Shown here: piece by piece, positions 4,272 through 34,626 of the stretch
Numbering within the stretch: position 1 is the first letter of the stretch
Layout of the letters: the number at the start of each line of letters is the position of its first letter
NCBI GenBank assembly: GCA_002269645.1
Contig: NIVC01002844.1
Span: 1 to 64,000, forward strand
Length of the DNA stretch: 64,000 nt
Reading direction: 5' to 3'
Source: Macrostomum lignano
Taxonomy: Eukaryota
Program-made: the position numbers and the translations under genes
Notes under the pieces: model-generated
Database searches by the model: none
Told to the model about the DNA's origin: nothing
Seen by the model: only the letters and a program-made list of their open reading frames with translations

Positions 4272-5030
4272 TTAGCCGAATGGGGACTGGCACTCGCACA
4301 GACCTTCGCTATTGCTTGGCGACATGTCGGACAGCCGTTCCCTTCCGTTATAAGCAGCGAGCAAGCCTTGTCCTCCGGAGTCGTCATTGGGCTCGCCATC
4401 GCTCCAGAGGTTGCTGCTGACGGTGTTGACGGTGTTGTTGTTGCAGCCGACCCAGTACCAGCCGCCATCAGGCTCAGCGCTGCCGGGCGCCTGAAATCCT
4501 CCTAGCCACAGAGTGTTTCTGCTCCCATGGAGTGACCTCACGTGCTTTATGTGCTCCAATTCTTCCATGCTCATCACGTCCGCCATGATCACCAGACCGC
4601 TCTCCGACTCGCATGTCGATTTTATGTCATTCCACGAGCCGCTGACCACCTTGTACTTGACTCCGCAGAAGTCGTCTCCGTATCCGGACGGACACAGCCG
4701 TCCCGCCGGCAGTCCCGGCTGCTGCCTCACGAACACCCGGCCTCGTCTCGAGCAGCCGCAGTCCCTCACAGACTTGCTGCACTTGTTGAACTCGAACAGC
4801 TGGCACGGACCGTCGGACAGGCTGTAGGCCTGGCACTGCGGTCTCAGGCCACACAGGATGGCGCAGTGCTCCACCGATGTAACTCCAGTGATGTTGCGGA
4901 CGAAGTCGCTGTTGATGCACAGGGAGCCGTTGATGGGAGTGAATCTCAGGGAGCAGGCCTGGCTGCTCAGAGCAGAGCTCAGCAGTGATAAAAAGACGAA
5001 GCAAACCAGAAGGCTGCCAATTTCATACAT
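4272..5030 (-). CDS. Secreted PAN/Apple-like + C-type lectin protein, copy A (252 aa, intronless)
   Basis: Signal peptide; HCAILCGLRPQCQAYSLSDGPCQL (PAN-like Cys core); C-type lectin features LWLGG, WYW, EPND and terminal LCEC. Confidence 0.85.
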   Translation of the reverse strand: MYEIGSLLVCFVFLSLLSSALSSQACSLRFTPINGSLCINSDFVRNITGVTSVEHCAILCGLRPQCQAYSLSDGPCQLFEFNKCSKSVRDCGCSRRGRVFVRQQPGLPAGRLCPSGYGDDFCGVKYKVVSGSWNDIKSTCESESGLVIMADVMSMEELEHIKHVRSLHGSRNTLWLGGFQAPGSAEPDGGWYWVGCNNNTVNTVSSNLWSDGEPNDDSGGQGLLAAYNGRERLSDMSPSNSEGLCECQSPFG

Positions 5031-7510
5031 GCTTGTTGCCGTGCGGCTTGTTGCTAAGAGTAAATAGACTCACTTTCTTTATGTGCGATGGTGAGCTCAG
5101 GCAGGTGAGTTGCCGTTTTGCTATTGGATGAACCAGTACTGACTCTCTTTACTTGCTGACTCAATTTTTCGTGCGTTCCATACCTTTATGGCTGCTTGGG
5201 TACCATTTAGATTGCCGTCTTTGCTTTTATAGAACAACTTATAATGATAAATTATATGATAATAATATTAATTAAATTTAATATGATATAAATATAAATT
5301 ATAGTTCCATAAATAACGTTTCAGTGGGATATTTCTCGGAGGAAATCAACCCCTTTGCCCAGTGCCAGTGGTAATGCCTTCAATTGACGTCAACTTGATG
5401 CGGGGCACAGCCGTCAGGGACCTCAGGGACTCCAACTCCAACGCCAATGCCACGAAGGTCGAAAGCGCACGAAAATGCTCTTCTGATGCTCAGAACAAAA
5501 TCCCTGCTCGGCGATCCGAACTCCGAAATTAGGTGAACGACTGACAGTGTGAAAGAGCGCGGAGGACAGCAGAAGGACCTTCGTCCGGCCTAGCCAAGCC
5601 CGCTCAACTTAAACAAAGCATTTTTTCGCAGAAGCGTTGCGGCCGACATTATTAATGCAGAAAAAATATTCTGTAAAAATAACTTCAATATTCTTGTCAA
5701 ACAGTAGTCAAACTGACTACCCTACTCTAACAGTAGGAATACCAAGCCATGTTTCCTTCCGTCAAACTACCAAGCCCTGACAGTTTCTTTGCTGCGCCGG
5801 AACGGAGCAACGCAGGCACACGAAACTCAAGAACACGGGCTAACTTTTTGTTGCGCACCTTCTCAAACAAGAATCAAGTCGCCAGCCCTCCGGACCGTCG
5901 AGATATTCGACGATTCTGCCAGAAGGTCGGATTGGATTTTTCCCATAAGCGCCAGTGTATTCAGTACACCCCTGTGCGCCAATCAGCACTGCGCCTCAGT
6001 GCAGCCTTGCCAAGCCTCCAAATTTCAACAGCACGTCGATCACATGTGTCTGCATCAGCTGTGACTTCGTTGGTCACTAGCCTTCACCCAGGCGGAGCTT
6101 CTGGACCTTCAACAGGTGGCACCAGGGGACTATGGAGACCCTGATGCGAATTTCTCTAGTTTCGCCGATCAAGCCTCGACAGTGGGCAAGCCTCAACTGC
6201 TGGACGTGCATTCACTGTACACACGGCACCGATTATTTCTATTATCAGTAAGCAGTATCGTTCATGGAGAACAGCGAGATTTTTCCTTGCACAGCGTGTG
6301 ACTGCAGCATCAAAAGCAGCAATTTTTGGACATACAGTTTTCTCCTCCTGCATCTTTCCGTCTTCTCAGGGGATGATAAAGCTTACCTGTCCATTTTAAA
6401 GAGCTTTCTAGTTGATCATTTATCATTCGCAATGCAGTATGTGGTGTGTTCAATAAGAGAGGAACATTAAATGTCATTTAATCAATCGCAGATCGATCTC
6501 TGCGAGGCGGTCGTAGTGGCAGTGCGATTGCAAAAACTGCGTCCCCTACTTGGCAGGGATCAAGTAGTCTATATGGCAAAGGTTTTCATTTTTGCTCCCC
6601 CTCCCCAGGGCATTAAACTGGAGGCAGAGCAGCTCATTGGCTGTCTCTCCCGCTTCTCAATACCTGGGTTCGATTCCGTAAAGGCCACAGTGGTTCTTAA
6701 TACACAATTACACACTAAGTCACTAGCCGAATGCGTAGTGACTTATCATGAAAATATTGAAAACAGTTAAGAATTCTTCGTAACTACAAGCGTGAATCTG
6801 GCACTTCCGCGAAATAACTTTTTTCCAAAATGCTATCAATATTTAGAGAAGCAATGCTTTCCCTAAAAAATGAAATCAGGATCGATTTGGGTGGCGTCTA
6901 AATTCGCATCGGCGCGATGCATTGAAAGTTATGATGTGGAAATGGGAAAAATCTTCACTAGTTTGCTGGGTCTCCTAAGAATACCCGACTGCCTGCTGAC
7001 GAAGACTGGGGGTTGGTCTGGCCACACAGCATGCGCTGTGGACTGCCTGCGCCTGCAGGAAGCGGGCTTCCAACGTGTGCGGGGCTTGTCTTCCCGCTTT
7101 CTATGGATTTTTCTGGCTTCTGCTCAGTCCACGGCTTCCGCTATTCGGCTTCCTGCCACTGGGTAGATGACAGAAAGATACTCAGTCAAAGTTTTTCTGG
7201 TCTACAGTACGTTTGCATGCCTGATTTGTCTGTTGAATAGAATTACAGACTTCTTAGAAGCAACTTCGCATTGTGCGGCCATGCGTCCCCGATCTGCAGT
7301 AAAATGCAGTTTGCGCAACACCAGCGTAATACGGCCAATCGAATGCAGAAGGGACAACGCGTGAAGAGGGCTGGGCTAGGCTGACCAGCCAAGAGAATAC
7401 TGCTTCAGGAAAAATTAGAAAAGTTGTTTCAGATCAAAATAGTTACATAAGAATTAACAGGGCGGTTGTACTTTGTATTGAAGTTGAAAAATGTAGCTTT
7501 TTCAGGCCAT

Positions 7511-7937
7511 GACCTACACGCATTCAATTTAGTCCAAGATATGTTTGTAAAAGTAGTGGAGCTTTTGTCTATGGTAGCAAGGGTGACACAGCAGCATTTA
7601 TTTTGGTCTCACAGGCATCAATTTGATTCATAGCGACTATGAAACCCAATCATGAGTTACAGGCTCATGACTGTGTATTTAGATAATTCCTTTTAGATGA
7701 GTAAATTTCACTGTACCAATACAAGGTGACGTCAAAAATGTAGTCTGCTCAATTATAACAAAAATAAAAAGAGCATTTTAGCATGGTCAAAAATCTACTT
7801 CGTTCACAAGCCCATGGCGTTCGTTAGAGCAAATTCTGGACCCAAGCGAATGCTTCTTGGACAAAATTAAATGCTGCTGTGCCACCTCTGCTTTACTTTG
7901 ACAACATATCTTGGATTAAATTAAATGCGTGTAGGTC
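7511..7937. mobile_element. Putative non-autonomous DNA element (MITE) with ~45-bp imperfect terminal inverted repeats
   Basis: gacctacacgcattcaatttagtccaagatatg at 7511 is the near reverse complement of catatcttggattaaattaaatgcgtgtaggtc ending 7937. Both ends are flanked by CAT (possible 3-bp TSD). Confidence 0.5.
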
Positions 7938-8820
7938 CATTAGTGCCGCTGCCAAATGACATGTCGGAATACTTGTCCCTTCCTGGGTAGGCAGCAATCA
8001 AGAAGTGCCCGTCTAGACTATTGCTTGGCTCGCCGTCGGCCCACAAGCTGCTGTCCACGGTGTTGTTGCAGCCGACCCAGTGCCAGCCCAAGGACTACTA
8101 GACTAGAACTATAACATTCCAGTGGTCCTTGCGCCAGCCAGCTGACGCGCGCGTGGAAGCCTCCCAGCCACAATGAAGTTCCACCGTCTGCTATATCGGG
8201 TCAGCCATGCTCACCAGCAGGGGCGTCGCCATGGATTTTATGGTAGGTGGAACAAAGCCAAGAACTCAAAATGTACATGTACATGACTAAATTCCTCCTA
8301 AATTTCCATTATTTTAAGGATCGTGTTGTCAGCGCTCATTTTAGCACCGCAGGCACTCATTTTAGCGCCACAGGCACTCATTTTGGCACCGCAGGCACTC
8401 ATTTTGGCGCCGCAGACATTCCTTTTAGCTACACAGGCACTCATTTTAGCGCCACAGGCACTCATTTTGGCGCCGCAGGCACTCATTTTGGCGCCGCAGA
8501 CATTCCTTTTAGCTACACAGGCACTCGTTTGGCGCTGACGGCACTCATTTTGGCGCCAGAGGCACACATTTTGCCACAGGCAAAATTATTGATTACCACA
8601 ACTAGTCACAAGGTGGGGTGGGGGGACAAAGCATTGGCATGTCCCCCATAGCTTTTAATAGAAGGGACATGTCCCCCCTGTCCCCCTCGGGTGGCGACGC
8701 GCCTGATCACCAGACCGCTCTCCGACTCGCATGTCGACTTTACAGTGTCCCACGGGCCGCTGACCACCTTGTACTTGACTCCGCACAGGTCGTCTCCGTA
8801 TCCGGGAGGACACAGCAGTC
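7938..8820 (-). pseudogene. Disrupted PAN/C-type lectin copy (lectin-domain half only), most similar to copy E
   Basis: 7938-8110 closely matches 27657-27830 (e.g. acttgtcccttcctgggtaggcagcaatcaagaa). There is a ~50-bp insertion near 8090-8150 and a hAT element at 8218-8705. Lectin sequence resumes at 8706-8820 and is then truncated. Confidence 0.85.
8218..8705. mobile_element. hAT-type non-autonomous element (488 bp) with internal ~21-bp tandem repeats
   Basis: TIRs CAGGGGCGTCGCCA / TGGCGACGCGCCTG. 8-bp TSD ctcaccag (8210-8217) / atcaccag (8706-8713); intact paralogues have a single atcaccag here. An 8-bp TSD is characteristic of hAT. Confidence 0.85.
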
Positions 8821-9118
8821 TTGCCAGCATTGCTAAACAAAATTCAACATTTTGAAGAAAAAAAGCTGTCAAAAAACCCAACGCCTCGTGTAAGTCAGTC
8901 AATATTTTGTTTAGGAGTTTGCTTTGAGAGCATTTTTTCAGCGTCAAAAAGTACAAGAACCTTCCCGCAACTCGTATATTGTCTATCACCTCACTGACTA
9001 AAAAATCAGCAATACAGTGAAACTCCACGATGTCTTTTGCATTTGTACTTCTCGCACAGTTTTCAAGAAGCATCATCATCAGCATTATTGCTTGCAGTCG
9101 GTCGAATTCCTGTTCAGT

Positions 9119-9859
9119 TCAGCTGAATGGGGAGACGCACTCACACAGACCGCGACTGCCGCTGCCCACACTCATATCGGACAGTCCGTTTCTTCCCGTA
9201 TAGGCAGCGATCAAGAACTGATTCGAATCGTCGTTGCTGGGCTCGCCGCTGCCCCACAGGCTGGCGTCCACGGTGATGTTGCAGCCGACCCAGTACCAGC
9301 CGCCATCAGGCTCCGGGCTGCCGTCCGGCTGGAAGCCTCCCAGCCACAGATTGCTACCATCACGAAGCGACTCCACGTGGCTCATCTCTGAGCTGCTCGT
9401 CACGTCCGCCATGATCACCAGACCGCTCTCCGACTCGCATGTCGATTTTATGTCGTCCCACGAACCGTTGTACTCCTTGTACTTGACTCCACAGAAGTCG
9501 TCTCCGTATCCGGGCGGACACAGCAGTCCCGCCGGCAGTCCCGGCTGCTGCCTCACGAACACCCGGCCTCGTCTCGAGCAGCCGCAGTCCCTCACAGACT
9601 TGCTGCACTTGTTGAACTCGAACAGCTCGCACGGACCGTCGGACAGGCTGAAGGCCTGGCACTGCGGCCTGTCCCAGCACAGAATGGCGCACTGCAGCTC
9701 CGAATTAATGCCCAGGAATGTTTGAACAAAGTCGCTGCTGATGCACAGGGAGCCATTGATGGGAGTGAATCCCGGAGAGCAGGACTGGCTGCTCAGAGCA
9801 GAGCTCAGCAGTGAGGCAAAGATGAGCGCGATACAGATGTTTCCGGTAGAATGCTGCAT
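9119..9859 (-). CDS. Secreted PAN/Apple-like + C-type lectin protein, copy B (246 aa)
   Basis: Start placed at MQHSTGNICIALIFASLLSSALSS (ATG 9859) by alignment to paralogues. Same Cys pattern; EPSN motif. Confidence 0.85.
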   Translation of the reverse strand: MQHSTGNICIALIFASLLSSALSSQSCSPGFTPINGSLCISSDFVQTFLGINSELQCAILCWDRPQCQAFSLSDGPCELFEFNKCSKSVRDCGCSRRGRVFVRQQPGLPAGLLCPPGYGDDFCGVKYKEYNGSWDDIKSTCESESGLVIMADVTSSSEMSHVESLRDGSNLWLGGFQPDGSPEPDGGWYWVGCNITVDASLWGSGEPSNDDSNQFLIAAYTGRNGLSDMSVGSGSRGLCECVSPFS

Positions 9860-10565
9860 TCCAGTTGCCGTTTCGGATCTGGTAGTCATTTTCGCACTTA
9901 GACTTACCTGCTTTTTAAGCAGGGCGTTCATGTGATCCGTTTTTTGCCATTGGCTGCTGCCTATCTGCTGGCAGGGGAGGATTGTGAAAGTAGTGATAGG
10001 CAATGAGTTTTTTTGAGATCAGAAGTATTGCCAAGTTTTTCGTTTTTTTTCTTTCGTTTATCTGAATAAAATGTTTTTTTTACTTTAACGAACAATGACA
10101 GCTGTCTATCTCTTTTCTTCTTGAGGAAATTGATATTTGAGAACAGGTAAAGGGCCTTGCTGCATCATCCACCCATATGCCAGTTTGCTTTTAGTGCTTT
10201 TAGCGCTAATGCAGTGAGGAAATGACAATGTCTCGGTTTTACATAAAATATCTTGTAATCTTGTAACTTCGCTGAACTGCCATGACTTGCTGAGAAAACT
10301 GCTCTATAATTTCCTTAATTGTGCCAATCATTTCGTTCTCCGTTTAGTCGCATTTAAAAGGCTGATCCTCTACCTTCAGTAGCTTTACCGTCACATCATA
10401 GTAAGAACTTGCGTGGAACGCGAATCGGGTGAGACCGCGCAGCGACATTCCCAGCCTGGTTTCACGCTATAAAATGTATTCTGCTAGTAGTGCTGGATAA
10501 ACTTTACTCCAGCACAATGGCTTGTGTTTGGGTTCCAGGAAGCTTGGCTGCCTGTAATGAATAGG

Positions 10566-11626
10566 GTAGACTTGATCCAGGCATTCACAAACCCGATCTG
10601 CTGCCAGTCACTCAGTAGACTTGATCCAGGCATTCACAAACTCGATCTGCTGCCAGTTACTCAGTAGACTTGATCCAGGCATTCACAAACTCGATCTGCT
10701 GCCAGATACTCAGTAGACTTGATCCAGGCATTCACAAACTCGATCTGCTGCCAGTCACTCAGTAGACTTGATCCAGGCATTCACAAACTCGATCTGCTGC
10801 CAGTTACTCAGTAGACTTGATCCAGGCATTCACAAACCCGATCTGCTGCCAGTCACTCAGTAGACTTGATCCAGGCATTCACAAACCCGATCTGCTGCCA
10901 GTCACTCAGTAGACTTGATCCAGGCATTCACAAACTCGATCTGCTGCCAGTCACTCAGTAGACTTGATCCAGGCATTCACAAACCCGATCTGCTGCCAGA
11001 TACTCAGTAGACTTGATCCAGGCATTCACAAACTCGATCTGCTGCCAGTCACTCAGTAGACTTGATCCAGGCATTCACAAACTCGATCTGCTGCCAGTCA
11101 CTCAGTAGACTTGATCCAGGCATTCACAAACCCGATCTGCTGCCAGATACTCAGTAGACTTCATCCAGGCATTTACAAACCCGATCTGCTGCCAGTCACT
11201 CAGTAGACTTGATCCAGGCATTCACAAACCCGATCTGCTGCCAGTTACTCAGTAGACTTGATCCAGGCATTCACAAACCCGATCTGCTGCCAGTCACTCA
11301 GTAGACTTGATCCAGGCATTCACAAACCCGATCTGCTGCCAGTCACTCAGTAGACTTGATCCAGGCATTTACAAACCCGATCTGCTGCCAGATACTCAGT
11401 AGACTTGATCCAGGCATTCACAAACTCGATCTGCTGCCAGTCATTTAATAGACTTGATCCAGGCATTCACAAACTCGATCTGCTGCCAGTCACTCAGTAG
11501 ACTTGATCCAGGCATTCACAAACTCGATCTGCTGCCAGTCATTTAATAGACTTGATCCAGGCATTCACAAACCCGATCTGCTGCCAGTCACTCAGTAGAC
11601 TTGATCCAGGCATTCACAAACCCGAT
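10566..11626. repeat. 49-bp minisatellite (~21.5 copies)
   Basis: Unit gtagacttgatccaggcattcacaaac(c/t)cgatctgctgccagtcactca, head-to-tail with no unique spacers. Confidence 0.97.
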
Positions 11627-12088
11627 TTTAAAATGGATTTGGGCTATCTCTAGACCAGGGAGTAACTGGCGGTAGTGTAAACCGGCCGTTAGTCTCGTCT
11701 TTTGACTCATTTTTATCATTTTTTACTTCTACTTAGGTATTTCCCTGTCTTCACTTCCAAAAAGCAAGTACAGCGATATACCATGCAAATATTTATTAGC
11801 ATTGCTAAACAAACAATTTAAAGTAAGAGAAAGCTGTCAAAAAGACACAACGCCACCTGCACATCAGCCAAGACTTCATTTAGAAGTTTGCCTCGAGAGT
11901 ATTTTGCAGCGTCAAAAGGTACGAGGACCCTCCCACAACCCGTATATTGTCTACCACCTCACTGACAACAAAATCAGCAATACATTGAAAAATTGCATGT
12001 TGTCTTGCGCAATGGTACTTCTTGCACAGTTTTCAAGAAGCATCATCATCAGCATTATTGCTTGCAGTCGGTCGAATTCCTGTTCAGT

Positions 12089-12829
12089 TCAGCTGAATGG
12101 GGAGACGCACTCACACAGACCGCGACTGCCGCTGCCCACACTCATATCGGACAGTCCGTTTCTTCCCGTATAGGCAGCGATCAAGAACTGATTCGAATCG
12201 TCGTTGCTGGGCTCGCCGCTGCCCCACAGGCTGGCGTCCACGGTGATGTTGCAGCCGACCCAGTACCAGCCACCATCAGGCTCCGGGCTGCCGTCCGGCT
12301 GGAAGCCTCCCAGCCACAAATTGTTACCACGACGAAGCGACTCCACGTGGCTCATCTCTGAGCTGCTCGTCACGTCTGCCATGATCACCAGACCGCTCTC
12401 CGACTCGCATGTCGATTTTATGTCGGTCCACGAGCCGCTGACCACCTTGTACTTGACTCCGCAGAAGTCGTCTCCGTATCCGGACGGACACAGCAGTCCC
12501 GCCGGCAGTCCCGGCTGCTGCCTCACGAACACCCAGCCTCGTCTCGAGCAGCCGCAGTCCCTCACAGACTTGCTGCACTTGTTGAACTCGAACAGCTGGC
12601 ACGGACCGTCGGACAGGCTGAAGGCCTGGCACTGCGACCTCAGGCCACACAGCATGGAGCAGTGCTCCACCGATGTAACTCCAGTGATGTTGCGGACGAA
12701 GTCGCTGTTGATGCACAGGGAGCCGTTGATGGGAGTGAAGCTCAGGGAGCAGGCCTGGCTGCTCAGAGCAGAGCTCAGCAGTGAGGCGAAGACGAAAGGA
12801 ACGAGAAGGTTTCTGCCAACTCACTGCAT
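12089..12829 (-). pseudogene. PAN/C-type lectin copy C, full-length but TGA at codon 3 (pseudogene, null allele or sequence error)
   Basis: ATG CAG TGA GTT GGC... at 12829-12821. The rest is an uninterrupted 244-codon paralogue (VGRNLLVPFVFASLLSSALSSQACSLSFTP...CECVSPFS). Confidence 0.75.
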
Positions 12830-13209
12830 GGCTGTTGGCGGTTTCGAGATTGCGTGAGTTCGACTCACTCTCTTTTAAAGCAAGGGACTCGCGTGATCCA
12901 GTTTTTGCTATTGGCCGCCGCTTGCGTTTTGACAGATTTGTTGGTTCACAGAATGGCAAAAAGTCTGTTTTTGCTGTAGTCAGGAAGGCATTGTTCTAGT
13001 GTAGGAAGGAACAATAGCAGCTTCTTTTCGCTGGGCTTTTTGATTGCATCCATACTACATGTGAACAGGTTCAGGGATTTGCAGGGACACGATTTTGTCG
13101 GAAGGGGGAATACTCCTAGCAGGAGCAGTAGGATATCGAAATACGTACAATAGATGCTGGCATGTAAGTCAGTTGATTTTTTCTGGGACATGCCTCAAAT
13201 GATAAACAC

Positions 13210-16691: not shown

Positions 16692-17429
16692 TCAGCTGAA
16701 TGGGGAGACGCACTCACACAGACCGCGACTGCCGCTGCCCACACTCATATCGGACAGTCCGTCTCTTCCCGTATAGGCAGCGATCAAGAACTGCTTCGAA
16801 TCGTGGTTACTTGGCTCGCCACTGCCCCACAGGCTGGCGCCCACAGTGTTGTTGCAGCCGACCCAGTACCAGCCGCCATCAGGCTCCGGGCTGCCGTCCG
16901 GCTGGAAGCCTCCGAGCCACAAATTGTTACCACGACGAAGCGACTCCACGTGGCTCATCTCTGAGCTGCTCGTCACGTCCGCCATGATCACCAGACCGCT
17001 CTCCGACTCGCATGTCGATTTTATGTCGTCCCACGAGCCGCTGACCTCCTTGTACTTGACTCCGCACAGCTCGTCTCCGTATCCGGACGGACACAGCAGT
17101 CCCGCCGGCAGTCCCGGCTGCTGCCTCACGAACACCCAGCCTCGTCTCGAGCAGCCGCAGTCCCTCACAGACTTGCTGCACTTGTTGAACTCGAACAGCT
17201 GGCACGGACCGTCGGACAGGCTGAAGGCCTGGCACTGCGGCCTGTCCCAGCACAGAATGGCGCACTGCAGCTCCGAATTAATGCCCAGGTATGTTTGAAC
17301 AAAGTCGCTGTTGATGCACAGGGAGCCGTTGATGGGAGTGAATCTCGGAGAGCAGGACTGGCTACTTAGAGCAGAGCTCAGCAGTGAGGCAAAGACGAAG
17401 GCAGTTTTGAGGCACTCAAGATGATGCAT
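16692..17429 (-). CDS. Secreted PAN/Apple-like + C-type lectin protein, copy D (245 aa)
   Basis: Intact ORF with signal peptide MHHLECLKTAFVFASLLSSALSS; same architecture; EPSN motif. Confidence 0.87.
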   Translation of the reverse strand: MHHLECLKTAFVFASLLSSALSSQSCSPRFTPINGSLCINSDFVQTYLGINSELQCAILCWDRPQCQAFSLSDGPCQLFEFNKCSKSVRDCGCSRRGWVFVRQQPGLPAGLLCPSGYGDELCGVKYKEVSGSWDDIKSTCESESGLVIMADVTSSSEMSHVESLRRGNNLWLGGFQPDGSPEPDGGWYWVGCNNTVGASLWGSGEPSNHDSKQFLIAAYTGRDGLSDMSVGSGSRGLCECVSPFS

Positions 17430-18240
17430 GGCTGTTGCAGCTGCCTGGCTTAGCTGCGCATTCGCTTTTTGTTCAGGTAATACAGCTTCTTCCTGTTGCC
17501 ATTGGTAGTCGCCGTGTCCAATAGTTGCTTGCCGAGATAGCGAAGGTAAAGTTCTGTGAAGGCAAAATGCTTCAATTGTTTAGGGAAAAGTTTTTTCTTC
17601 CAGGATCCGACGTCGCTATGCTTTTTACTTGACGAGCATTACAAATACGAGTGTAATGCCATAAGTCGCATAATTCAATGTTAAAATTATTTTTGTGCTA
17701 ACTTCTCACAAAAAGGCCACATGTCTTCTGAAATCTTCTGCCGTTTTCAATCATTTAAAAGTAAATAGTTTTTGCCTTCGTGTTGGTCTATCCAATGTTG
17801 GTATCTACTACCGTTCTCGACATTTTTGTGCTTACGGACAAAGTTTTTTTAGTGGTGAAATATGCAGTATTCTGGTTTTAGTATTCTGTTCTGTTATCCA
17901 TTCTGTTACTATGGTCTTCGATTGATCGATAATGGAGCAAAAGTAACTTTAGGGCGTGCAGCAGCAGAAAGCAATAGGACATTTCAGGCGAAGGGAAATG
18001 CAGTCAACTCTGCACAGACACAGAGCTGTGCACTTAATTGCTTGCGTCTTCATTTGGCAGCAGATCCAGGTCCTCCTCTTTTTCATCTTCGCCTCTTCGC
18101 CCTCGTCCGCTGTGAGCCAGCCTTCCTCCTCCTCTAGTATCCGGATCAAACTGCACTTGAGCCGTAGCCACGACAAACACTGTTCGACACAGTGTTAATT
18201 ACAGTGTAACAGTATAAAGTGTAAAACAGTGCTGCGCACT

Positions 18241-20005: not shown

Positions 20006-20685
20006 CTGTTTTCGCTGTGGCTTGGACTCTCAGAGATATTTCAGGAGTCAAATAAAGGATAAGTTGGTTGCTGTTTAAATTTACAGTCATTTGACTTTTG
20101 GTTTATAATATCTTAGCTCTCCTGAATTAGGCAAAAACAGCGCTTTTAAGGTTTTGTGACCAGTTGAAGTCTTACTATTCCATTCGTCAAAATTAATGGA
20201 TCTTGTCGGATAGAAAAAAATGAGAACTAATGAGAGTTTTATAATTAGCTCATTTTTTTAATCAAGCTTCTCAAGCTGGGAGAAAGTAAAGCCACGACTG
20301 AGACGAAGATAATAGGATCCAAGCTGATCAAGAGAAGGAATGGGACTGAGAGGAATACCTAACCTCGTATTAATGCCAAAAGTGAATTCCACTTTTCATT
20401 TGGAAAAGCAGAGGACACTTAAAGCAGTCCGACAGTCTGGCTGCTTTTAGCTTTTTAGGCAACTAAAGAGCAAGCTTCTTTAGAAAATAGTTCTGAATAA
20501 TGGAAAAAATTAAAGGGTTTAAAACAAGGTACCATCAAAGCAGGGTGTGACGATATTAGATGTACATTATTTCACAACTGGCAAGTGCATTACTCAAAGT
20601 GTATTTAAACTCACTTCGAACAGACAGCTTCATCTTTACAGCTCAGCTGCTTTTAAATAGTAATGTCCATTGCAAAGGAAAGATA

Positions 20686-23600
20686 ATGAACTTTGACGAG
20701 TCTGACAACCTCAAGAAACAACGCGAGATCCGGGAAACGGCTGAAATGATGAAAAAAATCGTAAGTTTTTTGTTTGTTGGTTTGAAATTCATCTATCTCC
20801 TGTATGTTAGATCAGCAGTCGTGAAACTTTCATTGTTGTTTCACATATCCAATAAGCAAATTAATGTTTTAATGAGTTTTAAAACTCTAAACTTGCCCAG
20901 GGTGCTCAAAGACGTTTTCGCAGTTTTGATCGACTCAGCGCAAAACTCAGGTTGTTTCTTGATTCTGTGGATCTGATCAGAAGTGAAGAAGGCGAGCAGC
21001 TGAAGTCCGAGCTGTTCGAGGTCGTGGTTGTCGGCGACCAGTCGGACGGAAAATCCACCCTTCTTGAGGCCATCACTGGTGTCCAGCTGCCAAAAGGAAC
21101 AGGAATTTGCACCCGCTGCCCAATTCGCTTGATTATTCGAGAAGCTGAGACTGAGTCTGCCTCGATTCAGTAAGTCTTGGCTGTCTGATCGCTTTGGGAA
21201 CTGTGATCTCGAAAACCTTATCTCAAAACCAATAGAAAAATTTGAAAGTGAAATTCCTTTTAAGTTTAAGCTCTCCAATCGTAATAGATATGTTCAAAAA
21301 AATGAATTAGCTATTAGATGCTTAGCAAACCACGGGTCCAACTTGTGTAGTATTTTTGTGACGCTGCTTTATATATTATTTTGCTTTCCTACTTTAAAGG
21401 ATCAACGAACAACCATCTAGAGAGGTTTCGGACCTCTCTAAACTCGAATCGGAACTTCAAAGGGCTCAGGATGACGTAGTCGCCGGAAGAAAGACCTCGA
21501 CAAAACCGATCACCGTTAAAGTAAATGGCCCACTGCTTCCTAATATTTCTGTTGTTGATCTTCCGGGAATAAACAGGTGAGATTTGAGCAAAAGTCTGTG
21601 GAACCTTTGCCAGTTTAATTAAGTTCGTGATATTCTGAAAAGTTGATTTTGTGTAAGGCCAACTTGGAGCTAGATCTGGTTTGTAGACATTGCCACAATT
21701 ATCACAATTTCGCTTTTAGAGAAACAGGTGACCGTGAGCAAGAGACAGTCGAGCTCATTAAGAAATGGATCACCCCACAGGAAACAATTGTTATTGTCAT
21801 AGCGAAGGCAACTAACGATATCGCTGCTTCAAAGGGCTACCAGTTGGCGCAGGAGGTGGACCCCGATAATAAAAGGACGTTTTTGGTGATTACGAACTGT
21901 GATGGATCCCTCGAGAATAAAGAGACTGATATTCAAAAGCTATTTAGTGAGAAGAAAAAGAAATTGTTCGCTGTCAAGTGCTTTCGCAGCACGGCCGATA
22001 CTACTGCTACTAGCCGAGAGGAACTCATGAATCACGAGGCGCAGTTCTTTGCCCAACATAAATTGTTCAAGCACTATTCACAAAATACCGGAACAGCACA
22101 GCTTATCCAGTCTCTGGAGGCTTTGTTGTGCAAAAAAATCGAACCACATCAGCAGAAAATTTTGCGCCACGCACGGGTGAGTACAATGATTTTGTATTTA
22201 CAATGATTTGGAACTTTATGCATACTTTTGAAATGTTGCATACACTCTTGCACTAATTGTACACAAATTATTTGCCAGAGAAGAGTGCGAGAACTTGAAA
22301 AGGAGTTGGAAGACCTCAAAACTGGGGAAAGCAAGTTCATGGACTGCGTTGATGAGTGCGTCTTTGATATTCGCACAGAGATCAGAGACCAAGTGACCGG
22401 CTCAGATGAGTCTGAATACCGAGACAACAAGCTCTATCAGAAATGCCGTGATGAATGGATGAACGCAGGCACCATGATGCGGGAAGAGTCGGCTAATTTC
22501 AAGAAAGACTGTAAGTTATGATGAAAAGTTTTTTCATTTTTTCTTTAGTTCGACTCTGACTCATTATTTTAGGAGTGGGAAGAGGAAAGGATGAGGCCTA
22601 GTTTATCTCCTAAGAATTCTAGGACTTCCTGAAGCAAGCCATGTGGCATCCAACATCGGCAGTGTTCTACCGTCCTCAGGCCACTATTTCCGAAAGAGTA
22701 TCGGAAATAGTAGTCAAGGAGAACTTGAAGAGCCCTCAGAAAGGCTACTCATTCTTGGAAGCTGTAGGGTTGTAATCGACACTGCATGCAGCGCCGGCAG
22801 CGACAGACGACCTAACAGATACGTCGCCGACAACCACTGAAACCGGGATGTCCAGTAGTTCAGATGTTCTAGCTGTCAACGCTTGATCAGAAAAATCAGA
22901 TGTATTCAAAACATGGTATCCATAGTAATTTAGGTGCCTTCTGTTGAAGAAGCCGACGGCGTCCGGTTGATGACTAAATGCTTGAGAGACTAGTTGAGAT
23001 GTCAAGCAGTTAAGATTTTTCGATTTCGAGGCTCCAGTGACATCAGAGAAATTTGCAAAAGGATGTCCATAGCCACCTGTTGCCATCTTTTGAGTGACGT
23101 GATTGCTCATTGGACTAGTTAAGGATGACCAGCAGTTGAGGTTTGCTCACTATTGAGGCTTGATCAGCGAAGTAGAATCAAGTCCTAGAATCAAGTGCTG
23201 ATGAAATTAGAAGGCTTCGAAGGGCCACTCTGAGGCGCAGTGCTGATTGGCGCACAGGCGTTGTACTGAATAGCATTAGTGTTTATGTAAACGCTAAAAC
23301 CGTTCTGACGGGATCATTGAATCTCTCGACGGTCCAGAGTCCTAGTGACTTGATTTTTGTTTGAGGTGCGCAAAAAACTTGCAGGCAACTTCGTGTGGCT
23401 GCGTTGCTCCGTTGCGCAGCAAAAACACCCCTTGGTATAAGAAGGATAGAAAAAGGCTACTGTTTCCTTGTAGAGCCTTGTTTTTTACTTTAATGTACAA
23501 GTGCATCTACGAGTATACGTGTGTGCGTTAATTTGTGTATTCGTGTACTTTTTTGTTAGCAGAAGTCTCCCGCAGATAACTCGTATTCAAACGAAGTTTT

Positions 23601-25695
23601 CTTCCCTTGCGTACCACAACTTCTATGCCTGCTATAAGTATGAGCAAGTTTCAGCCTTCTACCATCTACATGTACTTACGTTGTAGTCCACTACAAGTAC
23701 GAGTATTACACACGCTTCAGTGTTATTTCGCTTGTACCCGTAATCGATGTTAAAACCTCGTAGTCCTCATCGTCGTGCATCCTCCATTGTAACGATACAA
23801 TATGGTACAATCTTGGTACAATATGGGTTGTCAGATTCAGTGCATTCGTGTTTTTTATTCTTGCAGTACTGTCGACCATCAGAAAAGAGTGCGAAGCTCA
23901 AAGAGGCCGACAACTGGAACAGTTGCCAAACAACAGCCCGGTCTTGGAGCGAATCATCGGCAGATTGATTGAATCATTCAAGACTCTTGTCGGAGACACT
24001 ACTCAGGCCACGCAGAGTTATGTGCATGAAGAGCTCGTCAAAATAGTCAGGAATAACCTGCAGAAGAAACCTCTGCTGAGGGGTCTGCAACAGCTGGAAG
24101 AAATTCTAACTGATGGTTGTAAAAATCAAATGGATAAGCTTAAGGAAAAAGCGCACCGGAAAGTGCTGGAAATTCTAGACATGCAGAAAGTCATCTTCCT
24201 CAACAACCCAAAGATAGATGATCTGTTCAGGTATGTGTTTACATTAAATTTTTACACTTCTTTCATCCTTAATATCTTTATTTGAGTTCATTAATCATTT
24301 TCAGGGCGAGCTGCCTATTTTGATTAATATTTCATAAATTGGGTTCAAATAGCAAAGTTGAAAATTTAAGCGAAGGTTTCACTGTATAATGTACGAGCGT
24401 CGATTAGGTTTATGCTTTCTAGGTACGCTCGTATACGGATTCAAGTGTTTTTATTCTTGAGTCAGACTGGTGCCGAGCAAATCAAATTGTGTTTGTGAAA
24501 CTGGATGGGAAGTTATAATGTAATCCTACATGTATGCTTAGACATAATGAAATTTAAGCTTTGAAAAAAATCCGTTCAAACCACTGGGACCAATACGCCT
24601 CCGTATCCTGCTATATAAACCTAATTAGCACCTGTTTAAACCCAAAAGAAGACACAAGAGCAGCAGCATTAGCACGAAAGGGGATGCGCGGAAGCAACCC
24701 CATAAAAGCAGCAGCTCAAATTAAAAGTTTGTTTGGCATCACGAATGCAAACAGCGATGCAAGAAAATTGGAAAAATACGCGTCGTAAAACTTGAAAGAA
24801 AAACATTTTTTGAGCTCACGCAGGCAGCGAAAAAACGCAGAGTCAACTGAGCGAGACGCCAATAAAAGGGGCGACGGCGCAGAGGCTAAAGCCCATGCCA
24901 CCAGGCCACTACCCCACGCACGCAGAGCCAAGAACACCCCCCCCCCCACATAGCAAAGCGAGAGAGAACGTACGCAAAGCGACACGCAAGACAGGGCAGA
25001 AGAGAGGGATTTGAAACTGGTTATTGTCATTGACTAGTCAAGACCAGTCACAAACCAACATATTGTATTTCAACAATTTATCTATTTAATTAGCTGGTAT
25101 TTTGTTCCGCAATCACTACCAACTTGAATTTTCCAGCAAAATGGCTCACGAGAAAGACGAGCAAGCTGCTGAACATGCTCCTGAAAAAAAAGCAAAATCT
25201 TTGCTGCAAATCATTGAAGACTGCGCCAAAGACTGGCTTGAAACAAGTGATTCAGCTGGTTCAGGCGCAGTTCAGGCTGCTCTGGTTGGGATCATGTCGA
25301 AATTAGGGCTCCACCCGCCGATATCGCAACTGCTTGTCATCGCCGCGTTGAATTTCTTGCCTTGGTGGTTCTCACAGCCGGAATCAAAGGATCAAAGCTT
25401 CGACCACAAGGACGATGAGCACCGGCTGGTGTGCCTCACCTACGTGTACATAGAATTGGTCTGCGATCGAACGGCCGACGCGGTGCCGATGGCCATCATT
25501 CACTTCTTTAATAAAAGGCTGGCGGCGGACGTCTGCAAGCTCATTCCGCATCCTAAGTGGGAAGATTTAAAGAACCTTAGCACCTGTGCCCAGCAACAGC
25601 AGAAGATAGAATCTGCTTCTGACAGCCTGAGGCGTTGGAAGGACATTGTCGCACAGTTGTGCAGCCCAACATCTGATGAGACGTCAGCAGTTTAA
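20686..25695 (+). CDS. Mx-like dynamin-superfamily GTPase, 7 exons, ~710 aa
   Basis: Exons 20686-20760, 20901-21169, 21400-21576, 21720-22176, 22279-22510, 23867-24230, 25137-25695. All introns are GT-AG with consistent phases (2133 nt total). Motifs: G1 VVVVGDQSDGKS, LPKGTGICTRCP, G3 DLPG, G4-position TNCD, stalk QRGRQL (cf. Mx YRGREL), GED-like YIELVCDRTADAVPMAIIHFF. Confidence 0.88.
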
Positions 25696-26251: not shown

Positions 26252-26367
26252 GGGGTCGTACTATAAAGCTGTCGTAGCGTAAGTTCGATCGTACGTCGGA
26301 ACTTTTACACTGCGGAGATAGGAGCTAAGAACGATCTTATCTTACGATGGCTTTATAGAACGGGCTC
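26252..26367. mobile_element. Small inverted-repeat element (possible PIF/Harbinger-type MITE)
   Basis: ggggtcgtactataaagctgtcgta ... tacgatggctttatagaacgggctc form ~25-bp imperfect inverted repeats. TSD not clear. Confidence 0.45.
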
Positions 26368-27625: not shown

Positions 27626-28372
27626 TCAGTTGAACGGCGACTGGCACTCGCAAAGTCCATGAGTGCCGCTGCCCAGAGACATGTCGGACAACTTGTCCCT
27701 TCCTGGGTAGGCAGCAATCAAGAACTGCCCGTCAAGACCATTATTTGGCTCGCCCTCGGCCCACAGGCTGCTGTCCACAGTGTTGTTGCAGCCGACCCAG
27801 TGCCAGCCGCCTGCCGGCTCCGCGCTGCCGGGAACCTGGAAGCCTCCCAGCCACAATGAAGTTCCATCCGTTCGAAGCGACCGCACCGAGTTTACGTGCG
27901 CCATCTCTGCTATGCTTGTCACGTCCGCCATGATCACCAGACCGCTCTCCGACTCGCATGTCGATTTTATGACGTCCCACGAGCCGCTGACCACCTTGTA
28001 CTTGACTCCACACAGGTCGTCTCCGTATCCGGGCGGACACAGCAGTCCCGCCGGCAGTCCCGGCTGCTGCCTCACGAACACCCGGCCTCGTCTCGAGCAG
28101 CCGCAGTCCCTCACAGACTTGCTGCACTTGTTGAACTCGAACAGCTGGCACGGACCGTCGGACAGGCTGAAGGCCTGGCACTGCGGCCTCAGGCCACACA
28201 GGATGGCGCAGTGCTGCTCCGAAGTCACGCTTGGGAATTTTCGCACAAAGTCGCTGTTGATGCAGAGGGAGCCGTCAGTAGGAGAGAATCGAGTTTTGCA
28301 GAGCTCACTGCTGACTGACAAAGTTGCACAGGCAGAGACGATGCTCAACGTAAGGCTGTAGGCGACCTGCAT
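27626..28372 (-). CDS. Secreted PAN/Apple-like + C-type lectin protein, copy E (248 aa)
   Basis: Intact ORF with a divergent signal peptide, the shared core and an EPNN motif. Confidence 0.87.
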   Translation of the reverse strand: MQVAYSLTLSIVSACATLSVSSELCKTRFSPTDGSLCINSDFVRKFPSVTSEQHCAILCGLRPQCQAFSLSDGPCQLFEFNKCSKSVRDCGCSRRGRVFVRQQPGLPAGLLCPPGYGDDLCGVKYKVVSGSWDVIKSTCESESGLVIMADVTSIAEMAHVNSVRSLRTDGTSLWLGGFQVPGSAEPAGGWHWVGCNNTVDSSLWAEGEPNNGLDGQFLIAAYPGRDKLSDMSLGSGTHGLCECQSPFN

Positions 28373-28908
28373 GGCGAGGTTGAACTGAGCAGGGAGAACT
28401 GGCCAGCTCCAATGCTTTTTGGTGTTGATAACGTCTCTGCAGATGCTTTTGTTTCTTTGTTGTCGTCGTAATGAACAACTTACAGTAATGAACTCTGACA
28501 GCTGCTTTTGAACGCTTCAAAATTATCATTGTTTCCGAAATTTCTGCGTGCCTGCTGCCATGTCAGCTTGTCCCAATAGTTGAATGAATCAAATTTTTGA
28601 CAGTTAAATGGACGACTCTAATCAAATCAAGTCTGCCGTGAGTTCAATTGAAGCATTCAAAGGAAATTCGATTGATTTGCAGTGGCAGGAGTTAACTTGT
28701 ACTTTTTAACTTGTAGTCCAGGATCCGGTGGAGCAAGAACTCAGGCAGCTGGCTTTAGTTTGAGTTGGTATGCATTTGGTCATTATTGTTGCTGAACTTT
28801 ACGCTTAACGAGGTCGCGTAATGAGATTTATATCTCTGTAGAGTATCATTCATTCATGAAATACTACTGTAAGTAGAGTAATGCAAACACGCGCAGAAAA
28901 ACCTAAAC

Positions 28909-29050
28909 GATGAATCATGTTTCTATTTATAATAAAAAGATGAATCATGTTGCTATTTATAATAAAAAGATGAATCATGTTGCTATTTATAATAAAAAGA
29001 TGAATCATGTTGCTATTTATAATAAAAAGATGAATCATGTTGCTATTTAT
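28909..29050. repeat. 30-bp AT-rich tandem repeat (~4.7 copies)
   Basis: Unit atgaatcatgttgctatttataataaaaag. Confidence 0.92.
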
Positions 29051-30844: not shown

Positions 30845-31930
30845 AAAAAGAAGCGTCATGTAAAAATCATAGAAGCGTCATTTACAAAATCATAGAAGCA
30901 TCATTTAAAAAATCATAGAAGCGTCATGTAAAAAATCATAGAAGCGTCATGTAGACAATCATAGAAGCGTCATTTAAAAAATCATAGAAGCGTCATATAA
31001 AAATCATAGATGCGTCATTTAAAAAATCGTAGAAGCGTCATGTAAACAATCATAGAAGCGTCATGTAAAAAATCATAGAAGCGTCATGTAAACAATCATA
31101 GAAGCGTCATTTAAAAAATCATAGAAGCGTCATGTAAACAATCATAGAAGCGTCATGTAAAAAATCATAGAAGCGTCATGTAAACAATCATAGAAGCGTC
31201 ATTTAAAAAATCATAGAAGCGTCATGTAAACAATCATAGAAGCGTCATGTAAACAATCATAGAAGCGTCATGTAAAAAATCGTAGAAGCGTCATGTAAAA
31301 AATCTTAGAAGCGTCATTTAAAAAATCATAGAAGCGTCATATAAAAATCATAGATGCGTCATTTAAAAAATCGTAGAAGCGTCATATAAAAATCATAGAT
31401 GCGTCATTTAAAAAATCGTAGAAGCGTCATGTAAACAATCATAGAAGCGTCATGTAAAAAATCGTAGAAGCGTCATGTAAAAAATCTTAGAAGCGTCATG
31501 TAAACAATCATAGAAGCGTCATGTAAACAATCATAGAAGCGTCATGTAAACAATCATAGAAGCGTCATGTAAACAATCATAGAAGCGTCATTTAAACAAT
31601 CATAGAAGCGTCATTAAAAAATAATAGAAGCGTCATTTAAAAAATCATAAAAGAGTCATGTAAACAATCATAGAAGCGTCATGTAAACAATCATAGAAGC
31701 GTCATTTAAAAAATCATAGAAGCGTCATATAAAAATCATAGATGCGTCATTTAAAAAATCATAGAAGCGTCATTAAAAAATCATAAAAGCGTCATTTAAA
31801 AATCATAGAAGCGTCATATAAAAATCGTAGAAGCGTCATGTAAAAATCATAGAAGCGTCAAGAAAAAATCATAGAAGCCTCATTTAAAAACTAATGAAAG
31901 TGTCATTTAAAAAATTAAGAAGCGTCACGG
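30845..31930. repeat. 23-bp AT-rich minisatellite (~45 copies)
   Basis: Unit gcgtcatgtaaacaatcatagaa and variants. Confidence 0.95.
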
Positions 31931-32748
31931 TAGAATAAAAGAAACGTCATGTCAGACATGAAGGGTTCATGTAAAAATTAAATGCAATTATAATGCTGTG
32001 CTGGGGAGAAAAACTGAGACGTAAAGGCTCTCAGAGAATAACTGAGATTACGGGGGGGGGGGGGTTTCTGAGATGTCAAAGCAAAAGTCAGAAGCTACTT
32101 CAAAGTTCATGTCACGGGGGGGGGGCGCTGATAGAAGAAGAGTCATGTAAAAAATAAAAGTAGCACTATGTATACATAAAATAAAAGTCATGTCGAAGTT
32201 AAAAGATTCATTTGGGAATTGCTACGATGTCAAAGCTTGGTGGAAATCGTTATAGTGCTGTTATTCTTAAAGAAGGAATCACTAAAATGTCAAGGCTTAG
32301 GGGAGAAGAATTGCTGAGATTTCAAGGCTTTAGGTTGGCTTAAAGTTAGGTTTAGGTCAGGTGTGGGTTGAGGGTTATATTTTATCGGGTTTCAAGGTTA
32401 ACAGGGGATTTTTTAGATTTCAAGGTTTATGGGGGCCATTGCTGACATGTCAAGGCTTACGGGGGAATAGCTGAGATGTCAAGGCTCACGGGGGTATAAA
32501 TGAGATTTCAAGGCTAAAGTCAGAAGCTACATGTAGTTTATTGAAAACTTTTTATTACATTATTTGATGCCTCCTCAGGGGAGGGATCGCTGATAAAAAA
32601 GCGTAATGTAAAAAATAAAAGAAGCTTCATGTCGAAGTTAAGAGATTCGTTTGGGAATCCCTACGATGTTGAGGCTTGCAGGGAATCGCTATAATGCTGT
32701 AGTAGTGCTATAATGACTCTTAGAGAGAATTACTGAAATTTCAATGCT

Positions 32749-32810
32749 TTAGGGTTAGGTTAGGGTTAGGGTTAGGGTTAGGGTTAGGGTTAGGCTAGGG
32801 TTAGGGTTAG
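32749..32810 (+). repeat. Interstitial telomeric repeat (TTAGGG)n, ~10 units
   Basis: ttagggttaggttagggttagggttagggttagggttagggttaggctagggttagggttag. Confidence 0.9.
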
Positions 32811-33894
32811 AAGGTTGACAGATATTTTTAGATTTCCAAGGCTTATTGGGGGCATTGCTGAGATGTCAAGGGGGGAAGTTGATATGTTAAAGCTTGTGGG
32901 GGGGGATAACTGACATGTCAAGGCTTACAAGGTTTGACAGAAGATTTTTTAAGATTTCAAGGATACATGTAGCTTATTAAAAAAACGTGTATTGCATTTC
33001 TTTGGCTCCCCAACGGGGGGCGTAGATTGCTAGTTTTATCACTAATTTTCTTTGTCGTAAAGTACCAAATACAGTACCAAAAAAGTCCTGCAAATGACGG
33101 AAAGACCAAGTCAAGCTTTTGGAGCATAATGGACGTTATGAGGCAAATACTTGGTATCGAATACAGCCACGAAAATTTGAGTAAGGAAAACTGGTAGAAA
33201 ATGAGCGTCAGAAAAGCTAGTCAGAACATCTGTAACATACACAGTCTAAGAGTAACTGGGTAGTGTTGCCATGACAACAAGAACCAGAAGCCCGATATAT
33301 TGGATAGGTTGCAGAAGCCGAGACCCAACTGTGAAGCGACTGCTTCACTAGCTAAATAGAATGAAATGCTTGATAAAGAGAAAGTGGTAATTTCCATTAT
33401 ACGAGCTAAAACAGTTATAATGGAAAATAATTGTTATACTTTTAATATACAAGAAACCAGATAACTTGTAAACATTGAATACCGGCCTTGCTTACTGATC
33501 ATTTTTGTCTGTTTTCTTGTTTTTTTTTAATGAAAACGGTTGGCAACCATTTGTAAAAAATAACCCGCTCTGGGACACGGGATTCTAGATGCAAATCTGC
33601 TAGGTAGGAGAGATGCTCAAGAGTAGCCCAAGCGTCAAGCGTACCAGCGCTCATATGCTGTGCGCTGAAAAGCAACAAAATTAAATAATGCAAAAGCAAG
33701 CCTGACTCCATGCAAGCATTTCCAGTGCAAAACAAAATCGGAATAAACTGGTAGCCTTCTCTACGTTTAATTACTCTGACTTCACATAATTTAAACATAA
33801 ATTCACATAAAGCTCGCTTGATTGAGAGTCAGCGAGTTGCTGGCCACTGATCCAATGACTAAAAATCGTAATCCGAAATCTAAATTTCTCCTGC

Positions 33895-34626
33895 TCAGTG
33901 AAACGGCGACAGGCACTCGCAGAGACCGTATTTGGCGAACGAATAGTCAGTGAGTCCGCTCTTTTTGGTATAGACAGCGAGCAAGTTCTGCCCATCACCG
34001 CCATCGTTTGGCTCACCACCGGCCCAAAGGCTCGGGTCCAAAGGGATGTTGCAGCCGACCCAGTACCAGCCGCCATCAGGCTCCGCGCTGCCGGCCGTCT
34101 GGAAGCCTCCCAGCCACAGATCGTTACTAGGACGAAGCGACTCCACGTGGCTCATCTCTGAGCTGCTCGTCACATCCGCCATGATCACCAGACCGCTCTC
34201 CGACTCGCATGTCGATTTTATGACGCCCCACGAGCCGCTGACCACCTTGTACTTGACTCCACAGAAGTCGTCTCCGTATCCGGGCGGACACAGCAGTCCC
34301 GCCGGCAGTCCCGGTTGCTGCCTCACGAACACCCGGCCTCGTCTCGAGCAGCCGCAGTCCCTCACAGACTTGCTGCACTTGTTGAACTCGAACAGCTGGC
34401 ACGGACCGTCGGACAGGCTGAAGGCCTGGCACTGCGGCCTCAGGCCACACAGGAAGGAGCAGTGCTCCACCGATGTAACTCCAATGACATTGTGGACGAA
34501 TTCGCTATTGATACACAGGGAGCCGTTGATGGGAGTGAATCTCAGGGAGCAGGTCTGGCTGCTCAGAGCAGAGCTCAGCAGTGAGGCAAAGACGAAGGCA
34601 GTCTTGAGGCACTCAAGATGATGCAT
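33895..34626 (-). CDS. Secreted PAN/Apple-like + C-type lectin protein, copy F (243 aa)
   Basis: Start placed at MHHLECLK (ATG 34626), the same leader as copy D. EPND motif; distinct C-terminal loop sequence. Confidence 0.87.
   Translation of the reverse strand: MHHLECLKTAFVFASLLSSALSSQTCSLRFTPINGSLCINSEFVHNVIGVTSVEHCSFLCGLRPQCQAFSLSDGPCQLFEFNKCSKSVRDCGCSRRGRVFVRQQPGLPAGLLCPPGYGDDFCGVKYKVVSGSWGVIKSTCESESGLVIMADVTSSSEMSHVESLRPSNDLWLGGFQTAGSAEPDGGWYWVGCNIPLDPSLWAGGEPNDGGDGQNLLAVYTKKSGLTDYSFAKYGLCECLSPFH

Follow-up and report, generated by a model that had tools for sequence, protein, structure and literature searches.

Mosaic divergence brought about by interlocus gene conversion between tandem paralogues has been described for HMA4 of Arabidopsis halleri (bioRxiv 10.1101/2025.10.29.685298), and further cases are on record for the GOT1 paralogues of Tigriopus (PMC3728101) and the RPP8 NLR (nucleotide-binding leucine-rich repeat) genes (bioRxiv 10.1101/694240); the rates and tract lengths of conversion have also been reviewed (PMC3924818). 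Here we analyze region 4272-34626, on the minus strand, of a 64,000-nt stretch of Macrostomum lignano DNA (contig NIVC01002844.1, assembly GCA_002269645.1, hereafter the window), which holds six collinear, single-exon reading frames of 243-252 codons (~245 aa) arranged head-to-tail, copies A to F, each encoding, in this order, a signal peptide, a predicted PAN/Apple domain and a C-type lectin-like domain (CTLD). Our results make it likely that this locus is an old tandem array that evolves by birth-and-death together with recurrent germline interlocus (ectopic) gene conversion. The likeness to HMA4, GOT1 and RPP8 lies in the non-reciprocal patches, in the homogenized stretches that sit beside islands of divergence, in the new combinations of old variants and in tracts of tens to a few hundred bp; the differences are that the genes in question are intronless flatworm PAN plus C-type-lectin genes with homology confined to the coding sequence, and that the contrast is extreme, with a synonymous divergence (dS) of ~0.03 versus ~1 within 750 bp. 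Such a pattern is what interlocus gene conversion would be expected to produce in tandem arrays (bioRxiv 10.1101/2025.10.29.685298; PMC3728101), and it reveals no new mechanism; it does provide a compact example of concerted evolution and module reshuffling occurring jointly within one gene, and one of the moved blocks carries the C-type lectin domain's EPN/EPS position.

Two invertebrate recognition families offer what we regard as looser analogies. The sea urchin Sp185/333 (SpTransformer) genes are likewise small, clustered genes for secreted proteins that are built as block mosaics and for which recombination or conversion has been invoked (PMC5103432, PMC1988830); they are characterized by the presence or absence of "elements" with large alignment gaps, and short tandem repeats and segmental duplications flank the genes (PMC5103432, PMC1988830). 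The flatworm copies, in contrast, are collinear, belong to an unrelated protein family and have no gene-flanking repeats that we could find, so that an element mosaic of the sea urchin kind is not what is seen here. The fibrinogen-related proteins (FREPs) of Biomphalaria glabrata resemble the present family in being an invertebrate multigene family of lectin-type recognition proteins for which conversion has been proposed as a source of diversity (PMC3313920, PMC12074976); FREPs combine immunoglobulin-superfamily and fibrinogen domains, and their somatic diversification has been claimed from variants sequenced in individuals (PMC3313920, PMC12074976), whereas the present case consists of one germline sequence and of PAN and CTLD domains.

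The mosaic becomes apparent in a codon alignment of 765 columns, in which the copies are separated by two 12-nt indels and a few codon indels only, and which we divided into five segments: a leader (columns 1-75), an N-module (76-192), a core (193-460) and a C-module in two parts (461-594 and 595-765). In the leader, D and F form the one close pair (3/72 differences), all other pairs differing at ~20/72 positions or more. In the N-module the close pairs are instead A-C and B-D (4/117 each), with F at 11/117 from A and C, and ~30/117 differences separate the groups. The core differs by 5-13/268 in every pair, without any distant pairs. In part 1 of the C-module B, C and D lie within 2-5/122 of one another and F within 8/122 of these three, with A and E at 30-38, and in part 2 B and C are identical (0/159), D differs from them by 9/159, and A, E and F are 44-61 differences away from all others. 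A sliding nearest-neighbor painting reproduces the same module switches. Taken together, about five leader types, three N-module types and three to four C-module types recur, and the EPS-type (B, C, D) or EPN-type (A, E, F) C-module occurs with different N-modules.

An initial description of this locus, drawn up from the sequence alone and hereafter the preliminary description, had proposed that segmental exchange between paralogues builds new combinations of modules, and the conflicting segment trees and shared tracts bear this out for leader, N-module and C-module. Copy C was said to join ~118 bp of the N-module of A to ~190 bp of the C-module of B, with one mismatch each; we find 126 bp with 1 mismatch between A and C (columns 46-171) and 183 bp with 0 mismatches between B and C, extending up to the stop codon. 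For copy D, an F-type leader (~60 bp with one mismatch according to that description, 62 bp with 1 mismatch in our alignment) and a B-type N-module (4/117 differences) were likewise recovered, as were the GWVF and RRGNNLW markers common to D and C, the two copies being identical over columns 194-362; indeed, all the peptide markers quoted were found in their proposed places on the minus strand. The account of copy F stands in part: its N-module is A/C-like (11/117), yet its C-module is not unique as a whole, given that it opens with ~135 bp of BCD-like sequence (8/122) and that its unique portion is limited to the final ~155 bp. With regard to the remaining copies, A has a leader and a C-module of its own and shares its N-module with C; B shares its N-module with D and its C-module with C and D; D completes its F-type leader and B-type N-module with a core and C-module part 1 of C type and a C-module part 2 of B/C type (9/159); and E diverges most of all copies in its leader and its two variable modules, with a core that differs from the other copies by 5-10/268.

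That the modules have conflicting relationships, as the preliminary description also held, is confirmed by neighbor-joining trees of the segments, which recover BD|ACF for the N-module and BCD|AEF for the C-module with 100% bootstrap each. A test of the pairwise homoplasy index (PHI) type gave z = -10 to -14, with 0/2000 permutations as extreme, and a parsimony incongruence length difference (ILD) test over all 105 topologies required 37 extra steps, random partitions averaging 3.4 and never exceeding 11; the ILD and run-length permutations both yielded p < 1/2000. Counted in polymorphic sites, the longest uninterrupted identity reaches 88 between B and C and 32 between A and C (p < 1/5000 in each case). 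The 32 sites that favor AC|BD are all found no further along than column 403, and 38 of the 39 that favor BCD|A(E/F) are found from column 467 onward (32/0 versus 1/38, Fisher p = 2e-19). The mosaic is thus real and goes far beyond chance. From the triplet analysis we retained the extremes only, namely C from A and B and D from F and B, and set aside most of the dozens of 3SEQ-like triplets that were flagged, inflated as they are by rate differences, above all in the E leader. GENECONV-like runs in columns 46-73 were ignored because they reflect changes private to E, and a Hudson-Kaplan Rm of 36 was rejected as a count of events, since recurrent mutation at dS ~1 violates the infinite-sites assumption.

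The individual tracts (Table 1) are informative as to the type of exchange. Over columns 46-403 copies A and C differ by 8 mismatches only, and over the 117-bp N-module (columns 76-192) C differs from B by 33; both flanks of C are nonetheless B-like, weakly so on the 5' side (z = 10) and strongly on the 3' side (z = 88). An A-like interior enclosed by B-like flanks identifies this stretch as a non-reciprocal patch and not as the product of a crossover, so that of the "gene conversion or unequal crossover" originally proposed the former is favored over the latter. Similarity between copies otherwise extends no more than ~11 bp beyond the ATG and ends with the stop codon, the exception being B and C, which have ~290 bp of 3' flank in common; since this duplicated flank is ~80% identical beyond the 248-bp tract in which B and C do not differ at all, the latter points to recent conversion and is the youngest conversion tract of the array. 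Copy D is 95.5% identical to B over the coding sequence and its flanks show no similarity to any other copy, which implies that D has been almost wholly overwritten, with the exception of its F-type leader. Three hallmarks of gene conversion are therefore found side by side: incongruence along the alignment, a patch bounded on both sides by sequence of different history, and synonymous homogenization relative to neighboring sequence.

The last of these is most pronounced in the core, where dS is 0.02-0.07 in all pairs, as opposed to 0.5-1.8 in the flanking modules of the same 750-bp genes. A 30-bp "hinge" in the signal peptide (the SLLSSALSSQ block, columns 46-75) is also near-identical in all copies. 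The GC content at third codon positions (GC3) peaks in the core (0.81-0.84 versus 0.66-0.79), which is compatible with GC-biased conversion. In the DNA of a distant relative (L001), conserved core residues are specified by a different codon in 40% of cases; hence there is no deep nucleotide-level constraint that would explain the identity of the core, and this free synonymous divergence weakens the idea that the core is kept by an antisense gene or some element acting at the nucleotide level.

These observations may be accounted for by assuming that conversion keeps the 268-bp core and the 30-bp hinge near-identical in all copies, and that these identical stretches would in turn provide the sequence match needed for repair to transfer an entire divergent block between paralogues. 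We infer that repair would proceed by double-strand gap repair or synthesis-dependent strand annealing with end points in the identical stretches, presumably in the germline; the outcome would be a patchwork of a few old module types in differing combinations. The break points are in fact located in stretches that are identical in all copies, i.e. the block at columns 46-75 and the core, as homology-dependent gap repair would predict. Tracts do not reach beyond the coding sequence, the flanks having become too divergent to be recognizably alike. A CCAAT box (GCCAATRGCAAAA) ~85-95 bp and a TATA-like motif (TTAAAAAG or ATAAAG) ~50 bp upstream of each ATG (e.g. 9905-9960 and 12875-12930) are nevertheless found at constant spacing in flanks that cannot otherwise be aligned, and the conservation of these promoter-like motifs indicates that the flanks are homologous but very old. 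A short CAACAGCC motif stands immediately before the ATG.

Table 1. Lectin gene copies, modules and shared tracts of the array (positions in the window)
Feature	Position	Strand	Remarks
Copy A	4272-5030	-	intact, single-exon, 252 aa; signal peptide, PAN/Apple and C-type lectin domain, EPN motif
Copy psi	7935-8829	-	seventh, decayed copy; core piece 8700-8829; E-like C-module pieces 8141-8187 and 7935-8088
Copy B	9119-9859	-	intact, 246 aa from the homologous ATG; EPS motif
Copy C	12089-12829	-	both flanks B-like, interior A-like
Copy D	16692-17429	-	intact, 245 aa
Copy E	27626-28372	-	intact, 248 aa
Copy F	33895-34626	-	intact, 243 aa from the homologous ATG; leader of D type
N-module of F	34438-34554	-	A/C-like
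C-module part 1 of F	34048-34169	-	BCD-like
C-module part 2 of F	33895-34047	-	unique
A-type tract inside C	12427-12808	-	columns 22-403; A counterpart 4631-5012
Identical B/C tract	12024-12271	-	248 bp, 0 mismatches; B counterpart 9054-9301; coding end plus 65 bp of 3' flank
D/F leader tract	17368-17440	-	62 bp of coding sequence with 1 mismatch, preceded by 11 similar bases upstream of the ATG; F counterpart 34565-34637
Homogenized core, D	16973-17240	-	268 bp; counterparts A 4574-4841, B 9400-9667, C 12370-12637, E 27919-28186, F 34170-34437

Several points speak against interlocus conversion as the explanation of the array, or at least counsel caution. Only one genome sequence is at hand, from which the timing, the direction and the reality of individual tracts in the organism can be judged indirectly; our tests are home-made analogues of PHI, GENECONV, 3SEQ and ILD and not the reference programs; and the triplet test flags many triplets in part because of lineage-specific rate differences, above all in E. 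The D-F leader tract is without recognizable upstream homology that could anchor a conversion event, and this leader could instead be a relic of common ancestry in a gene whose remainder was overwritten, just as some hybrid copies could have arisen by unequal crossing-over followed by turnover of their flanks. Unequal crossing-over might also be taken to account for the whole array, by means of reciprocal exchange and duplication of hybrid genes, with a core that stays similar only through strong purifying selection: the array is tandem and head-to-tail, a truncated copy abutting the 3' flank of B is a typical by-product of unequal exchange, and the core is also the part most conserved at the protein level in distant relatives. 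We consider this unlikely, given that the B-like flanks of the A-like interior in copy C are impossible to obtain from a single crossover, that purifying selection on amino acids cannot yield a core with dS 0.02-0.07 beside modules with 0.5-1.8, and that in the distant relative the core can vary freely in its synonymous codons. Nor would we ascribe the mosaic to an artefact of assembly or polishing, in which a chimeric consensus of near-identical paralogues simulates identical patches, an explanation that we hold to be very unlikely. Macrostomum genomes are repeat-rich and difficult to assemble, mis-mapped polishing reads could produce perfect patches such as the 248-bp tract common to B and C, and exact-sequence look-ups of the A, D and F proteins and of protein P0001 in public collections returned no match, all of which would be in keeping with an artefact; however, each of the six copies is set apart in unique flanks that do not align with those of the others, the key swapped blocks differ by 27-38%, a divergence across which short reads would not mis-map, and the swapped blocks hold private differences (4/117, 3/72 and 9/159) such as real tracts accumulate as they age. 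That convergence or regionally heterogeneous mutation generated the pattern with no exchange at all can be regarded as effectively refuted: rate heterogeneity is clear, the leader and the modules being far more variable than the core, but shared blocks are synonymously identical over 126-248 bp, other lineages having a dS of 0.5-1.8, and the PHI and ILD permutations reject a single tree.

A different question is whether the reshuffling is put to use. The preliminary description envisaged a mix-and-match diversification system of leader by PAN by lectin. The modules do not coincide with these domains, one break being located within PAN (~aa 64/65) and another within the lectin domain (~aa 153). 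Accordingly, the N-module comprises the first half of the PAN domain only, the core comprises the second PAN half, the linker and the opening ~40 aa of the lectin domain, and the C-module comprises the remaining lectin domain, including the long-loop and EPN/EPS region. The existence of a dedicated or somatic system is unsupported by the variable modules, whose mean dN/dS of 0.3-0.5 gives no gene-wide signal of diversifying selection, and by the module borders, where no recombination signals or repeats were found; the immune role of the family is an assumption. A programmed version of this scheme would have shuffling at a high rate, possibly in somatic cells or neoblasts, with the defective copies C and psi as donors, in the manner of snail FREPs or of pseudogene conversion at chicken immunoglobulin loci. 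It would agree with the combinatorial reuse of few module types, with the two defective copies holding module types that are used elsewhere, and with a second M. lignano array (that of P0012, see below) that has a matching pattern at the protein level. We nevertheless deem it extremely improbable, because five of the six copies are intact and have promoter-like motifs of their own, unlike a layout of one acceptor and an array of donors, because the dN/dS ratios and the unmarked borders apply here as well, because the differences accumulated in the shared tracts make the events rare and old, with one exception, and because the evidence is a single genome sequence. Along similar lines, the array might be a germline module library, in which the identical hinge blocks are kept homogeneous so that divergent recognition modules, those stored in the defective C and psi among them, may pass from one expressed gene to another fairly often; this we hold to be highly improbable, and were it true, exchanges in neoblasts could give rise to lectin repertoires that are specific to the individual and even heritable. 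A related candidate variant, cDNA-templated conversion, would explain why homology ends at the ends of the transcribed or coding unit.

Of the seven copies five are intact, the defective ones being C and psi only. Copy C opens with ATG CAG TGA, i.e. an in-frame stop at codon 3 (12821-12823), and has no later in-frame ATG ahead of the PAN domain; the remaining frame is intact, and the copy is probably a pseudogene or a leaderless, defective gene. A tiny intron or a spliced-leader AUG as a means of rescuing this frame was rejected because the frame does not fit. Copy B has additional in-frame ATGs upstream of the homologous one. Copy psi is truncated at its 5' end, where the first ~320 nt are missing, its C-module fragments are 91% identical to E, and a 21/84-bp tandem repeat (8335-8573) has been inserted into it; it abuts the 3' flank of B and starts at the exact end of the B-C 3'-flank homology. 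The copies are 2-10 kb apart, in flanks that cannot be aligned with one another, and no further lectin copy was found within 36-64 kb of the window.

As regards the encoded proteins, a domain assignment by Pfam alone had to be rejected, every match being under its cut-off: Lectin_C scored 15.5-19.8 bits (cut-off 22.6), and PAN_3 and PAN_4 reached only E = 0.05-0.1. A family profile compared with the PDB fared better, matching codakine (2vuv, E = 2.2e-5) and selectins (~1e-4) as well as one PAN/Apple domain, that of Eimeria MIC5 (1hky, E = 9.5e-4). An AlphaFold (AF2) model of copy D, computed from a family alignment of 26 sequences, attained a mean predicted local confidence (pLDDT) of 90.4 and a predicted template-modeling score (pTM) of 0.83; a previous model from a 10-sequence alignment was discarded (pLDDT 42). 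In Foldseek searches against the PDB the C-terminal half of the model matched langerin, CEL-I, codakine, DC-SIGN and mincle (E 2e-7 to 5e-6, TM score relative to the target 0.7-0.79), and the predicted structure has the two helices, two sheets and long-loop region of the CTLD fold. Residues 30-102 are modeled as five strands and one helix, as in PAN/Apple domains, and residues 1-24 as a hydrophobic leader of low confidence.

Judging from motif alignment, the position equivalent to the canonical sugar/calcium site is occupied by EPN in three copies (A, E, F) and by EPS in the other three (B, C, D), in register with the EPN of codakine and L-selectin; the WND position reads LSD or LTD (xSD/xTD), so that WND is not conserved, and a WLGG motif equivalent to WIGL is present. 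The fold predicted here is that of the carbohydrate-recognition-type lectin domains of langerin, DC-SIGN and CEL-I as well as codakine (PDB 5g6u, 1wmy, 2vuv), and A, E and F have EPN at the canonical position; the flatworm proteins differ from these lectins by the fusion to a predicted N-terminal PAN/Apple domain, by the EPS of B, C and D, by the unconserved WND and by a Lectin_C score below the cut-off. A 17-residue string, WLGGFQPDGSPEPDGGW, occurs exactly in B, C and D and also in P0005 and P0010, two bacterial PEP-CTERM lectin-domain proteins; this sharing between bacteria and a flatworm is striking, and it probably results from ascertainment, since the search was indexed by words and the CTLD motif concerned is widespread.

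All of the nearest relatives in databases come from Macrostomum lignano and are named in UniProt only as "C-type lectin domain-containing" or "Apple domain-containing", the best of them, A0A1I8HTM9, being 69% identical overall and identical through the core; the PAN plus C-type-lectin family is expanded in this species. One M. lignano model of 3072 aa, A0A1I8H3Z5 (P0012, "Apple domain-containing"), is a fused or mis-predicted gene model with at least three tandem members of a sister subfamily, two copies of which have protein-level identities of 99% (core), 78% (N-module) and 62% (C-module); a conserved core with variable ends may hence be a general trait of the family. In the literature, searches for lectins of Macrostomum yielded nothing but large adhesion proteins and the unrelated "Mlig-tuf2", which has a weak CLECT match. 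Our analysis documents an uncharacterized, expanded PAN plus C-type-lectin family in a lineage that serves as a flatworm model of regeneration and about whose immune or recognition repertoire very little is known, and it advises annotators and phylogeneticists to be cautious, because single-tree analyses of this family will mislead.

In the 3-36 kb interval around the genes, Tandem Repeats Finder located five tandem arrays, none of them framing the genes; large intergenic arrays lie between B and C (10566-11626, 49 bp x 21.7) and between E and F (30849-31927, 23 bp x 47, and 28905-29050, 30 bp x 4.9), and further satellites are located at 48.8-50.4, 51.4-52.3, 53.3-53.9 and 60.0-60.5 kb. The D-E interval contains fragments of a dynamin-family GTPase (21643-25695, plus strand; Pfam Dynamin_N and Dynamin_M, E ~1e-7). 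Open reading frames at 18692-20090 (minus strand) and 43981-45307 (plus strand) resemble, in translations read by eye, reverse-transcriptase or retroelement remnants, and a Pfam search with the frames at 18692-20090 gave no match. Just downstream of the lectin array, an open reading frame at 36320-36865 (plus strand) combines a signal peptide with a trypsin-like serine-protease N-terminus (IIDGVEA...TAAHC). Finally, long open frames of up to 217 aa run antisense to every lectin gene and in its alternative frames, e.g. at 12204-12857, 27780-28361 and 34046-34621 (all plus strand); they are conserved because the DNA is conserved, and they are probably a by-product of GC3-rich codons.

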